Assembly (NCBI GenBank): GCA_964247055.1
Contig: OZ176054.1
Span: 5,642,001-5,706,000, forward strand
Length of the DNA: 64,000 nt
Origin: Paragordius varius
Taxonomy: Eukaryota > Animalia > Nematomorpha
Direction: 5' to 3'
Shown here: piece by piece, positions 20,622-52,627 of the stretch
Layout of the letters: each line of letters begins with the position of its first letter
Numbering within the stretch: the first letter of the stretch is position 1
Program-made: the position numbers and the translations under genes
Notes under the pieces: generated by a model
What the model was told of the DNA's origin: nothing
Database searches by the model: none
Seen by the model: only the letters and a program-made list of their open reading frames with translations

Positions 20622-21134
20622 ATGAAAGATAAAGCCTTAATTAGGGCAATTAAAGTATTTTTTGTAACATATAAAGGCTAAATACAGACGAGACTGGTAT
20701 AATTTTGCAGCAAAAATTCTATTTGTAAGTCAATTATCATTGGATATCACAGAAAATGACCTACAAGAAGTAGCAAATTTTTTTTATTAAAGTTCTTCTC
20801 CCGATATGGGAAACTCAAGAATGTAAAACTGGTTCGAGATTGTGTTACTGGAATGTCTAAGCGCTATGCTTTTATCACATTTAACGACACAAAATCCTTA
20901 AATAGTGCTTATAAGCTGGCCAATGAAAGGATTATCAATAATTGTAGAATATTAGTTGAATTTCCTGCATATTATGTCCCTGATTGGAAACCAAGGAGGC
21001 TTGGTATTATAATTATAATGGGTTATATTTCAAATTAATAACTCTATTTTTATATGTCAGGGGGAGGGTATGGTGGCAAAAAGCATTCAGGACAATTAAG
21101 GTTTGGTGGTAGATGGATGAAAAACAAGTTATAA
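20622..21134 (+). CDS. SNRNP35: U11/U12 snRNP 35 kDa protein (RRM), 4 exons, 136 aa
   Basis: join(20622-20654,20677-20769,20793-21003,21061-21134), introns of 22, 23 and 57 nt. The spliced product DKALIRAIKAKY...LFVSQL...FFSRYG..VKLVRDCVTGMSKRYAFI...WKPRRLGGGYGGKKHSGQLRFGGR carries the U11-35K-specific GGKKxSGQLRFGGR tail. Confidence 0.88.
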
Positions 21135-21209
21135 CTAAATGGGTTAATCAGTTATTTAAATTACAACAATCATATTGATTATGTAATGTACATATTTCTA
21201 TTGTGATCC

Positions 21210-21597
21210 ATGTCAATAATAAAAATATTATTGTTATTTTTCCTAACCTTGAACACAAATTATTTTTGTCGAGAAAATAAAAATTGTCCGACTTTATGCG
21301 CTAAATGTGTTTTAATAACGGCCAATCAAGCTTTACAGGATTTGTCAGACTGTGTGAATAATTGTATGAAAACTAAGGGAAAATCTTTGAAAGAAGGTTA
21401 AGAACTTTAATATATTTCAAATAATTTTATTACATAAAATTTTTTATGCCGCGTATATATAAAGAAAATTTATTATTTTCGTTTTTAATATTATAAACTT
21501 TAAAAAAATTTATTTTTTAACTTTTAATTCTTATATATATATAGAGTGTTATATACCCTATAATCCTTTAACAAGTAGCAGAAATGAATATGGTTAG
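21210..21597 (+). CDS. Small secreted six-cysteine peptide, eclosion-hormone-like precursor (79 aa)
   Basis: join(21210-21396,21545-21597). Hydrophobic signal peptide, then CPTLCAKC-x14-CVNNCMKTKGKSLKEECYIP...EYG. Cys spacing and the KxKGK motif resemble eclosion hormone. Confidence 0.62.
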
Positions 21598-21681
21598 CAA
21601 ATTTATTAATTCGTAAAAAAATAAATATATTTTTATATAATAAATTAATGAAGCATAGTTAATAATTTGTGAATACGTTCA

Positions 21682-48700: not shown

Positions 48701-50722
48701 CATTGGTATATATTATTTTTTTCGAAATATTAGATAACTAACTATTAATCTACGTATCACATTACATTTAAAAAAAATTGTAAAATATTCTACCAGCCAT
48801 CATAAAATATAATTTAGTTGTAATTTTTTATAATTTAAAATAAACCACTAATTTTTTGGTTTAAAAAAAATTGGGATGTTATTTAAGGAACGATTTTGAC
48901 TTTAAATCCTATGTCACAACTTGTAATTTATGCTTTATCAAACGCAAATTTCACATAAAATAAGGTTAGCTGTAGGTAGACATACAAGGTGAGCCAAAAT
49001 CTTTCAACTTTTTTATTTCTTCGGGTTCAAAAATAATTTTTGCCCCGCCATATTCCATGTATTTGCGTGTAGGCTCAGCCATTTCAATGTCTTCCACATC
49101 CTCCTCAGGTAAATTGAGTTCTTCTCCTTTCTGAGATATAATTTCAAGCGTGTCTTTATCCAACTTAATGGGTGTAGGCATTTTGGAAGAGGACACGAGC
49201 GAGTACCTATAAATATTGGTTTATTCAATGGTTTTAAACCAGTAATGACAACATATTTTTACGGCCCATGAATATTTAGCAAATTACCAGGTAAAAATAT
49301 AAAATTCGATAATATGCAAATATATGCCATCTAAAACGTTGGTAAAATTGATATTTTTAAACAAATTTAAACCTGCATAAATTTTAATTTTGGCAACGAA
49401 GTGGCAATTAGAAAAATAAATAATAGTTATTTGTTCGTAAATTTTTTACAGTATTTTTATATCTAATATAATATTTAATGATGCTCATACATATTTATTC
49501 GAATGCAACCCTAGCCATTTGGGCATATATGCTTAAATATAATGTTTGCTTTATTAACATAATTTGTTTTTAAATTGAAATTATATTTGCAACAATATTT
49601 GTGAGGTAGAATAAAAAAATAAGTACTTAATCAAAAATTAAAGATTATAGGCTATGTCATGATACAAGGTTAAACTGACAAATTATATTAAATATTTATG
49701 ATACTGCAAACCAAACATAATAGAATCATATTATACGAAAAGACGAATATTGCATGATACCAAACTGCATATCAAAATGTAAACAGTAACATAATATTTT
49801 ACAGGGATATTCCGATAGCTAAATTTGGACCAATTATTAGAGGGAGTTTTGATATGGCTTTCTTATGATAATCGTAAATCCGGAGTCTGGAAGTCAGTTC
49901 ACGCAATATATCTTTATAATTTGGATATCCGTTAACTTCCTCATCGCTTAACCCTAAAACGTCCTAATATTATTTTGTTTGTCATTATGATACTTGATAA
50001 AAAAGTTTGAGATCAAATATTTTGTTGGAATACCCAACTATTTCAATATCAATGTTTTGCTCATACAAATCTTTTACCCTTTGCATTAGGAGTTTCTAAT
50101 TAAACATTTTCATGTTATATTTACCTTAGATTTGATATTATCCACCGGATTAGGATAAGCTGTAAAAAGAAAAACCTTTTTGGAACCAATTTTATACTTG
50201 CTAAAATAAATTTTATAAAAAAAAACTTGGAGATAAACATATTGGAACATAACCAAAAACACTCAGCCAAAGTACAATTTTCTTGCCCCCTTTCAAAAGA
50301 TGTATGATCTATGTGTTATATTTGGACGCCAACTTAATATAAGATATTCCAGTTTTTTGATAACATCCGCACCAATACTTTGGAAATCTTGATATACATA
50401 AATATGTTTAAATTCATTCATATTTTTTGTAATTTTCTACGTTATAAATATTTAATTACTGTATTAAAAAGTATAACTGCGTTTTGATTTTTATCATTTG
50501 CTATAATATCCCGTAACATCCAATCTCTGATTGTCTTAAATTATTATTAATTTTAACTTTGATGGTTAAAGAAAACCAATTTTCATCAAACATTTCATTT
50601 TCGCAATCAATTAAAAATATAGTGCCGTCTCTAAAATTAGCCTCCTCCTAGAAATTAAATTAATCCCATACATTATAATTTTCGTCGATTTCTTCATCAT
50701 TCCAAATATTTTCCCAATTCAT
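45754..50722 (-). CDS. XRCC6: Ku70 (vWA, beta-barrel, SAP domains), 16 exons
   Basis: Exons 50672-50722, 50558-50647, 50460-50534, 50334-50436, 50227-50308, 50125-50200, 49994-50095, 49803-49963, 48986-49206, 47986-48074, 47754-47882, 47059-47167, 46460-46552, 46192-46382, 46029-46088 and 45754-45876. Motifs [59 protein letters not shown], and [12 protein letters not shown]. Confidence 0.95.
47406..47545. repeat. 140-bp near-perfect hairpin in Ku70 intron 11
   Basis: Arms of about 54 bp (TTTCGATTACTACAAGTAATCTTTGTCAAA...) with 1 mismatch and a loop of about 32 nt. Confidence 0.9.
48376..48636. mobile_element. Second foldback MITE copy (fewer 21-bp units) in Ku70 intron 9
   Basis: Same termini and unit as 33736-34130, with about 2 left and 3 right units. 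Confidence 0.8.
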
Positions 50723-50753
50723 CGTGGTTAGATATCACATATGTTTAGCTTCT

Positions 50754-52627
50754 ATGCGTAAGGAAAAAGTTGTGCTTGCGTATTCGGGTGGTTTGGATAC
50801 CTCATGCATTCTTGTTTGGCTTATTGAAAACAATTATGATGTCATTGCATTTTTAGTTTTTGATATATTATTTTATTATTTAGGCAAATATTGGACAAGA
50901 AGAAGATTTTGATGAAGCCAGAGCCAAAGCTATGAAATTGGGTGCAATTAAAGTTATTTTGGTTATAATTGTGTTATAGGTAATTATTTCAGATTTGCGT
51001 AATACCTTCTTACAAGATTATATACTCCCATTGCTTCAATCTGGTGCTATGTATGAGCGGCGATATTTTATGGGTACAGCGATTGCAAGACCATGCATTG
51101 CTCATGAAATGATCAAAATAGCCAAAGAGGAAGGCGCAACTGCTGTTTCGCACGGAGCTACAGGGAAAGGCAATGATCAAGTAAGATTCGAGCTCGCTTT
51201 TTACGCTCTTCTCCCAAATGTTAACATAGTGGCCCCATGGAAAATACCAGCTTTCTATGAACGTTTTTGTGGTCGACCCGAATTATTTGAGTATGCTAAG
51301 CTAAAGGGAGTGCCCTTACCCCAATCACTTACACCGAAAACACCATGGAGTGTTGATTCTAATTTAATGCACAACTCTTATGAATCGGGTTTGTTGGAGG
51401 ACCCTTATAATACGGCACCCAAAAACTTATACCAATTAACACATGATCCATTTGTTGATATAGCAGGAGATGATAGCAATAATAATGGCAATAATGCTGA
51501 ATTAAAAGTATTAGGGACACCAAACATACCCGATGAAATTGAAATCTATTTTAAAGCCGGAGTACCCAATAGGCTTATTATCCACTCTTGTACGGATGAT
51601 GTAACGTGTCCCCCCAAAAAAGTTGCCAAAGTATCATCACAAATAAAAGAAAAAATCATCGAAAATGATTTGTTATCTCTTTACTGTAAATTGAACGAAT
51701 TGGCTTCACTCCATGGTATCGGTAGGATAGATATTGTTGAAAATCGGTTTATTGGCATGAAATCGAGAGGCATTTACGAAACACCAGGTTATCAAATTTT
51801 GTATGAAGCTTATCGTGATTTAGAAATGTTGGTTCTAGATCGGGAAGTCCTTAAAATTAAACGGTATAATGTGCATTCAATTAATGTTTTTTATATTTTT
51901 TATTGCTAATATTACACTATTTGTACAAATATTTTTGGAATCCTTGCCACAATTTTTTTTCCATATTAAAAAAACTTGCAATTTGAAAAAAATATATATT
52001 TTTGCCGACGGCTTTTTACATTGTCACAGTTATCGTTGCTTAATGTTCAATTATACCATTTTATAATATTGTTTAATAAGTATTTGGGTAACAGCGTGCA
52101 AACTTCGTCTAAAAGGCGTTACCCTTAAATTATATTGATTTTATATGACATTTTGTTATTAGATACTTATCCGATGTTTTTGCTGATCAAATTTACAATG
52201 GTTTTTGGTTTTCCCCTGAATGTGAATATACGCGAGCTTGCCTTCGTTTAGCAGATAAAAATCTAATTAGTGGGAGCGTTAAACTTCGTTTATTTAAAGG
52301 ACACATATACATACAAGCACGTCAACCGGAAAGATCTTTATCACTTTATGACAAAGACTTAGTTAGTATGGATATCAAGGGAGATTACAATCCTATAGAT
52401 GCTCAGGGATTCATTAAAATTAATGCTCTCAGGTTTATAATCAGATCTAAATTTTCGATAAGTTTTTAACATATAAATATTTAATTAAAACTTTTTGTGC
52501 TTTTAACAATTATGATCTATTTTGTTTGAAAATAAAATTGAGTCATATAATTTTATTGCATTATACTTGCTGTCTTAGATTGAAAGCCCATCAATTAAGG
52601 AAAGAACGATTGAATATTGAAATTTGA
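50754..52627 (+). CDS. ASS1: Argininosuccinate synthase, 5 exons
   Basis: join(50754-50855,50884-50952,50980-51863,52163-52432,52579-52627). [61 protein letters not shown]. Confidence 0.97.

Follow-up and report, generated by a model that had tools for sequence, protein, structure and literature searches.

Introns of 20-30 nucleotides (nt) with GT...AG ends and minimal signals, whose retention creates premature stops, are known from Paramecium and other ciliates and from the Bigelowiella nucleomorph. In humans, short introns whose pyrimidine tract is truncated are removed by the major spliceosome without U2AF, via SPF45/RBM17. A survey of 51 animal genomes (Hadjez et al. 2026, PMC13644364) detected introns shorter than 30 nt in no animals other than myxobolid myxozoans and Dicyema, where the signals are reduced to GTa...AG with an A-rich stretch before the AG, U2/U2AF are intact and the intron positions are conserved. 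We have now analysed a 64,000-nt stretch of the genome of the hairworm Paragordius varius (Nematomorpha; assembly GCA_964247055.1, contig OZ176054.1, positions 5,642,001 to 5,706,000), referred to as the window, in which 11 segments of 22-30 nt interrupt the genes Ku70, ASS1 and SNRNP35. Sequence, homology and comparative gene structure indicate that these segments are in all likelihood genuine U2-type (major) spliceosomal introns which have shrunk from old introns. The nuclear assembly comprises 110.6 Mb in 44 contigs, and the window, with a G+C (GC) content of ~29%, lies on the contig designated C5.

Ciliates and the Bigelowiella nucleomorph are unicellular systems whose introns are almost all tiny, whereas P. 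varius is an animal with two size classes of introns. The human introns dependent on SPF45/RBM17 are rare and measure 43-65 nt or longer, in contrast to the 22-30 nt observed here. Like the introns of the myxobolid Myxozoa (Henneguya, Thelohanellus and Myxobolus) and of Dicyema japonicum, those of P. varius appear to be U2-type introns shorter than 30 nt at conserved positions, with GTa/AG ends, As shortly upstream of the AG that may serve as the branch site and no pyrimidine tract, and these animals are likewise parasitic and AT-rich (PMC13644364). However, the median over the whole genome is 22-27 nt in the myxobolids and Dicyema and is backed by RNA (PMC13644364), whereas the predicted tiny introns of P. 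varius form a minority mode and share the 110-Mb genome of this member of the Ecdysozoa with repeat-bearing introns that are hundreds to thousands of bases long.

All 11 supported micro-introns, like the 25 longer introns with which they were compared, begin with GT and end with AG. Their removal restores the reading frame and the colinearity with orthologous proteins in ASS1, Ku70 and SNRNP35, which is undecided or does not hold for two further candidates in a WIP-like gene. Retention of any of the 11 would result in a frameshift or an in-frame stop, and the three with lengths divisible by 3 each hold an in-frame stop; mis-spliced RNA would therefore be non-productive. Nine of the 11 are in phase 0. 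The junctions were scored by local scripts against orthologous proteins, and the exons were searched individually, not as joined models. A previous reading of the window made from the sequence only had counted 13 micro-introns, of which 11 are supported here; one of the two in the WIP-like gene is undecided and the other is probably wrong. For the six segments that it had listed in SNRNP35, the WIP-like gene and ASS1, the coordinates, lengths (22, 23, 22, 26, 28 and 27 nt), GT...AG ends and quoted donor hexamers were all correct. Its view that such introns occur in several genes of the window agrees with the results for ASS1, SNRNP35 and Ku70, and members of the class were found elsewhere in the genome in Ras-family genes. 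In each of these three genes of the window, the micro-introns come first from the 5' end (introns 1-7 of Ku70, 1-2 of ASS1 and 1-2 of SNRNP35) and are followed by the longer introns.

Both predicted micro-introns of ASS1 were confirmed by comparison with orthologues. Their junctions scored highest among all frame-keeping GT..AG choices when measured against the argininosuccinate synthase (ASS) of amphioxus. The segment 50856-50883 shifts the frame and the segment 50953-50979 carries an in-frame stop; tblastn matches with the amphioxus and dog ASS proteins run continuously over both, and exons 1 and 2 cover positions 1-30 and 32-55 of the Pfam profile, respectively. The phase-0 end of exon 1, the 69-nt length of exon 2 and the first residue of exon 3 agree with those of amphioxus and the bivalve Mya, and Gordionus shares the 69-nt exon 2 and the two phase-0 positions. 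At the first position the intron measures 28 nt here, 1126 nt in amphioxus, ~3.9 kb in the bivalve and 39 nt in Gordionus, and at the second 27 nt, 3231 nt, ~1.4 kb and 15,790 nt (L047:1211-17000), respectively, the bivalve and amphioxus lengths being obtained by subtraction. The donor of the first ASS intron is GTGAGT in both amphioxus and Mya. Since the positions are common to amphioxus, the bivalve and Gordionus, the shrinkage of old introns is well supported, and the earlier proposal that the ASS1 micro-introns are shrunken old introns flanking a 69-nt exon 2 can be retained; its statement that the positions are common to human ASS1 was examined by way of amphioxus and the bivalve. The large ASS1 exon is closest to the protein of Gordionus (Nematomorpha), with 59% identity and insertions in common. 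In Gordionus, the ASS model P0001 lacks the N-terminal part that is present in P0125. The start codons of Ku70 and ASS1 point apart with 31 bp between them (window 50722-50754); either the 5' untranslated regions and promoters of the two genes must overlap, or the 5' ends of the mRNAs are made otherwise, e.g. by trans-splicing.

All seven predicted micro-introns of Ku70 were supported as well. Each takes out a stop or a frameshift, and the exons remaining after their removal are colinear, with no gaps at the junctions, with two Ku70 models of Gordionus. The latter has introns at, or one or two residues from, all seven positions; their lengths are 43, 41, 42, 892, 949, 4391 and 421 nt, with five boundaries resolved to GT-AG and the values 892 and 949 representing gaps between matched exon blocks. 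The 4391-nt intron of Gordionus corresponds to the one of 29 nt here. A Ku70 exon showed 57% identity to Gordionus XP_065317084, and the seven short N-terminal exons gave no Pfam matches. One of the two Gordionus models, P0121 and P0123, lacks the N-terminal part encoded by the exons flanking the shortest introns.

The two hairworms are thus alike in having the same genes with the same intron positions (RefSeq and submitter models of Gordionus from GCA_954871325.2), a GC content of ~27-29%, weak donors (GTAAAT, GTTTTT, GTAATT and GTATGA in Gordionus) and an AAG acceptor. In contrast to P. varius, the shortest introns observed in Gordionus measure 39-43 nt, and several positions occupied by 25-30 nt here hold introns of 0.4-15.8 kb there. 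The size floor therefore differs between the two hairworm genomes. A search of the available literature found no report of intron sizes for Nematomorpha, and the word 'intron' is absent from the Gordionus genome preprint and from a comparative preprint on Mermithidae and Nematomorpha.

In SNRNP35, which encodes the U11/U12-35K protein, the micro-intron 20770-20792 was confirmed by homology. In the PDB, exon 3 is matched best by residues 71-140 of human U11/U12-35K (E 6.8e-11), and the Pfam RRM_1 profile resumes at its position 18 exactly at 20793, after the 23-nt segment. Counted by eye, the final 17 residues of exon 2 (31 codons) would fill RRM_1 positions 1-17; this exon gave no match to a Pfam family and a single, weak PDB match to RRM beta1/alpha1 (E 1.6) which ends exactly at the exon end. 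The segment 20655-20676 is a probable micro-intron: reading through it runs into a stop, and exon 2 lacks an ATG and is closed in its frame just upstream, so that the 11-codon first exon is needed. Word-indexed searches for homologues with the SNRNP35 exons gave no match in the range of lengths covered. Removal of the 57-nt third intron generates RRLGGGYGGKK, a motif typical of 35K/U1-70K. Both micro-segments were found ungapped in DNA contigs, 20655-20676 in the sequencing run X1 and 20770-20792 in run X5, and since they have the same length in contigs of two studies, they are not assembly errors. Coverage of 19250-25249 by runs X1 and X5 is even over genes and spacers and DNA-like. The X1 allele has four single-nucleotide polymorphisms and two indels in the 57-nt intron and substitutions only in the exons, and such variant calls would be usable as a test of coding versus non-coding sequence elsewhere in the genome. 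Over 19250-25249, allelic divergence in this run is high, amounting to several percent, with indels, in the non-coding parts and to ~2% in SNRNP35 exon 3. The 35K protein of P. varius has only ~136 residues; the long charged tail found in its human counterpart is missing.

The two candidates in the WIP-like gene, so classed by its WH2 motif and by a 'PPP' WASP-binding-like motif that follows the 743-nt intron, fared differently. For the segment 23637-23658, the spliced and the read-through C-termini are both open, no homologue tells them apart, and its nature as a micro-intron is undecided. The segment 24994-25019 is probably not an intron: the 'exon' downstream of it enters a dispersed repeat (24820-24916) and its flanks have no WIP character. 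The commoner allele in run X1 has lost the donor G (25019 C>A) and carries 1-nt insertions at 25003 and 25014, and the donor forms only 2 of 9 pairs with U1. In a simpler model of the gene, the N-rich exon would be spliced directly to ~24726. A second copy of the 24820-24916 repeat, 83.5% identical, is present in a CCT2 intron on contig C1. Another high-copy repeat lies in a WIP intron at 23850-24060, with a depth of up to ~1,000,000 compared with ~700, and many copies of it occur in a 200-kb sample of contig C1. The coordinates of all these features and of the snRNA loci mentioned below are collected in Table 1.

Table 1. Genes, introns and other features of the window, and loci of small nuclear RNAs (snRNAs) elsewhere in the P. 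varius genome
Feature	Position	Strand	Description	Evidence or remark
U11/U12-35K (SNRNP35) gene	20622..21134	+	~136 codons, 4 exons	RRM_1 match; PDB match
SNRNP35 micro-intron 1 (probable)	20655..20676	+	22 nt, GTATTT...AAAG, phase 0	Joins only ATG to exon 2
SNRNP35 micro-intron 2	20770..20792	+	23 nt, GTAGCA...AAAG, phase 0	RRM_1 resumes at 20793; read-through gives a stop
SNRNP35 intron 3	21004..21060	+	57 nt, GTATTA...TCAG	Splicing yields RRLGGGYGGKK
WIP candidate micro-intron (undecided)	23637..23658	-	22 nt, GTATAG...TTAG	GT..AG and length correct
WIP long intron	23733..24475	-	743 nt, GTAAAA...TTTAG	Links proline-rich exon to exon with LHVTESEKPPPLV, a WASP-binding-like motif
Dispersed high-copy repeat inside WIP gene	24820..24916	.		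Contig depth up to ~460,000 versus baseline ~700
WIP claimed micro-intron (probably not real)	24994..25019	-	26 nt	GT..AG and length correct
WH2 motif of WIP-like gene	27657..27692	-	LLSEIHQGIKLKK	Six-frame motif scan
NSF gene	43097-45428	+		Pfam AAA/CDC48
NSF single intron	45063..45135	+	73 nt, GTATAT...TTTAG	
Ku70 downstream part	45766..49802	-	Seven introns of 596, 911, 103, 586, 506, 77 and ~315 nt	Pfam Ku, Ku_C; junction scoring against Gordionus Ku70
Ku70 micro-introns, all seven	49964..50671	-		Colinear with Gordionus Ku70 proteins
Ku70 micro-intron	50648-50671	-	24 nt	
Ku70 micro-intron	50535-50557	-	23 nt	
Ku70 micro-intron	50437-50459	-	23 nt	
Ku70 micro-intron	50309-50333	-	25 nt	
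Ku70 micro-intron	50201-50226	-	26 nt	
Ku70 micro-intron	50096-50124	-	29 nt	
Ku70 micro-intron	49964-49993	-	30 nt	
Argininosuccinate synthase (ASS1) gene	50754..52627	+	5 exons	tblastn with Gordionus, amphioxus and dog ASS; Pfam
ASS1 micro-intron 1	50856..50883	+	28 nt, GTTTTT...TTAG, phase 0	Best junction, 213 versus 181
ASS1 micro-intron 2	50953..50979	+	27 nt, GTTATT...ATAG, phase 0, in-frame stop	Best junction, 151 versus 138
ASS1 intron 3	51864..52162	+	299 nt, GTATAA...TTAG	Junction scoring; position as in Gordionus
ASS1 intron 4	52433..52578	+	146 nt, GTTTAT...TTAG	Junction scoring; position common to amphioxus, bivalve and Gordionus
U1, one type	L001:1501-1665	-		Both types 114-124 bits
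U1, same type	L003:1501-1665	+		
U1, other type	L002:1501-1666	+		
U1, same type as L002	L004:1501-1665	-		
U6atac	G000:C2:4857045-4857187 (L044)			Genome search
U11	G000:C5:11395495-11395742 (L045)			Genome search

The genes with shrunken introns also contain introns of ordinary length, from 57 nt to ~1 kb. The supported introns of the window divide into 11 of 22-30 nt and 12 of 57-911 nt (11/23 micro), and the non-micro introns sampled range from 46 nt to >3 kb. Genome-wide intron lengths were obtained from exon-by-exon Pfam matches, the genomic gap being corrected by the profile overlap. Of the 33 introns of Ras-family genes, 11 were estimated at ~19-31 nt, and these belong to seven genes located on three contigs. 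No intron fell at 32-45 nt, eight were 46-86 nt and the others ≥251 nt long. The micro-introns look like a separate length mode. In CCT genes, none of the 31 introns was shorter than 67 nt, and an ultra-short length is not the typical (median) intron length of this genome.

The comparison of short and long introns, which the sequence-only reading had proposed and which was made here on genomic introns, showed that their donors are alike and weak and that exon position -1 and the 3' tract differ. No difference between the classes was found at donor positions +3 to +6: A at +3 occurs in 6 of 11 micro-introns and 18 of 25 long ones (T in the other five micro-introns), G at +5 in 2/11 and 3/25, and the bases beyond +3 are close to the A/T background. 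Since the long introns share the weak donor, the weakness is genome-wide and not micro-specific, and degeneracy of the donor can no longer be considered a trait specific to the micro-introns. The claim that donors are nearly random beyond GT was also overstated. Real donors form 4.7-5.5 of 9 pairs with the 5' end of the genome's own U1, compared with 3.7-3.8 for decoy GTs, exonic or intronic (p≤0.0014), i.e. ~1-1.7 more Watson-Crick pairs.

At exon position -1, A was found in 9/11 micro-introns versus 7/25 long introns (Fisher p=0.004, uncorrected, several positions being tested) and G in 1/11 versus 14/25. Long introns exhibit a T-rich 3' tract, T/C at -3 and CAG, whereas the 3' part of the micro-introns is A/T-mixed, with T at acceptor position -3 in eight and A in three; AAG acceptors, described previously as several, thus amount to three of the 11 supported micro-introns. 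The absence of a polypyrimidine tract from micro-introns was borne out by the comparison of the 11 with the 25 longer introns. The motif TAAY, with its A 4-12 nt from the 3' end, is present inside 8/11 micro-introns, the number expected on the basis of the interior of long introns being 3.9 (P=0.013).

Base composition separated real micro-introns from decoys better than any motif. The mean GC content is 19% in the micro-introns and 31% in the 20-nt exon flanks, and GC≤0.25 was found in 10 of 11 real micro-introns, whereas only 24 of the 241 decoys, i.e. GT..AG pairs 20-31 nt apart in 10.9 kb of exon, had such a value. With the +3/-3 and TRAY filters added, eight decoys and eight real micro-introns remained. 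A large part of the usable information thus resides in AT content, as the sequence-only reading had proposed, although the decoys were not fully separated; recognition of micro-introns by length and AT content is an inference. An ab initio scan of 314 kb for frame-restoring GT..AG segments, using a codon-usage score and control dinucleotide pairs, revealed no excess over the controls, but it was underpowered and missed 8 of the 13 segments listed earlier and 7 of the 11 supported ones.

The splicing machinery appears conventional. U2 with GUAGUA and U6 with ACAGAGA have the canonical recognition sequences, the SF1 helix-hairpin domain was matched with 74.9 bits, and a U2AF65-like locus is colinear over four exons. 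The predicted standard recognition apparatus thus shows no sign of loss, and the losses of snRNAs or of U2AF/SF1 which had been proposed as a check on the micro-introns were not seen, U1, U2, U6, SF1 and the U2AF65-like gene all being conventional. Two full-length types of U1 are present, with the 5' ends ACUUACCUG and ACUUACUUG, which differ by a C-to-U change at the base pairing with exon position -1, the variant with U being referred to as the U9 type. They show compensatory stem changes, and at least 17 U1-like loci were found, clustered on contig C6. The minor spliceosome is lost in C. elegans-type nematodes. In P. varius it has apparently been retained, since U6atac, U11 and the 35K gene are present; a filtered genome search did not detect U12 snRNA, which is not evidence of its absence.

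We propose that the micro-introns would be recognized by intron definition, i.e. across the intron, by the conventional major spliceosome using minimal signals. The donor would be GT plus A or T, forming 4-6 base pairs with U1, the branch point an adenosine in a TAAY-like motif that lies 4-12 nt from the 3' end, and the acceptor [T/A]AG. Recognition would be aided by the marked excess of AT over the exons. As there is no pyrimidine tract, the choice of the 3' site probably depends on the distance from the branch point.

Several observations weigh against the interpretation of the segments as shrunken U2-type introns. Two runs listed under this species label and guessed to be RNA gave no matches in the region, with nothing aligning to 19250-25249. 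The sample of 11 micro-introns from three genes and 25 longer introns is small, and the TAAY enrichment is modest and was obtained from this small sample against an AT-rich background. From 8 to 24 look-alike decoys stay in 10.9 kb of exon, so that the separation of real introns from decoys is incomplete, and one real micro-intron (the 25-nt intron of Ku70) has 40% GC. The Ras-family lengths were estimated from match coordinates without sequence, with an error of ~±6 nt set by judgement, and the absence of micro-introns from the CCT genes means that the class is unevenly spread among genes. The lack of RNA reads would also fit the view that the segments are kept, the genes being pseudogenes or the segments assembly or sequencing errors, with GT...AG arising by chance in AT-rich sequence. 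Chance pairs of 20-31 nt are common, as the 241 found in 10.9 kb of exon show, and one of the six listed segments (WIP 24994-25019) is probably such a pair. This view is nevertheless very improbable. The ASS1 and Ku70 segments lie at, or one or two residues from, orthologous intron positions in other species, the exons between the micro-segments are open and conserved, the SNRNP35 segments were recovered from DNA contigs of two independent studies, and three housekeeping-type genes are unlikely to be broken alike.

The micro-introns might also constitute a separate class with its own factor, either a U9-type U1 or U2AF-independent factors as for short human introns. Such a class would be consistent with the preference for A at exon position -1, the micro acceptors devoid of a T-rich tract and CAG, the length gap between 31 and ~46 nt and the existence of two U1 types, since micro donors pair better with the U9-type U1 (5.45 versus 4.73) and long donors with the canonical one (5.00 versus 4.72). 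We regard it as unlikely, because the data come from three genes with several positions tested, positions +3 to +6 are the same in both classes, and both phase 0 (9/11) and the AT-rich third codon positions are confounding factors for the -1 A; moreover, four short introns of Gordionus (39-43 nt) show no -1 A bias. A two-track system of 5' splice sites, in which the U9-type U1 would serve the A|GT micro donors and canonical U1 the G|GT long donors, is decidedly doubtful, but if it were true, intron size class would be coupled to a dedicated snRNA variant. The smallest internal eliminated sequences of ciliates are similar in size range to the micro-introns, and U11, U6atac and the 35K protein are retained in P. 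varius, so that removal at the DNA level or by the minor (U12-type) spliceosome was also considered. Both have an extremely remote chance of being correct. The segments end in GT...AG and not in TA...TA, and DNA contigs spanning both micro-segments of SNRNP35 and both candidates in the WIP-like gene included no copies without the segments; U12-type introns, defined by the donor [AG]TATCCTT and the branch site TCCTTAAC, were not found among the micro-introns, the donor occurring in none of the 11, and the positions match those of spliceosomal introns of other animals. Splicing of shrunken introns by the conventional major spliceosome is thus the explanation we favour.

Frames resembling those of long terminal repeat (LTR) retrotransposons, with protease, reverse transcriptase and integrase character, were noticed at window positions 1-1700 and 35378-38792 (minus strand). 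One of these elements is near-intact, with two 458-codon frames, and the elements lie between host genes.

Gene finders and completeness tools which forbid introns shorter than ~30-40 nt would break genes of the type described here. The low BUSCO scores and 'missing' universal genes reported for hairworms should therefore be re-checked by alignment that allows for micro-introns. As judged from its genomic sequence, P. varius would be the third, independent animal lineage with introns shorter than 30 nt. Tiny and long introns in the same genes, together with introns of 0.4-15.8 kb at the same positions in a related genus, provide a natural contrast within a genome and within a phylum, which bears on the minimal information required by the major spliceosome and on how introns shrink.

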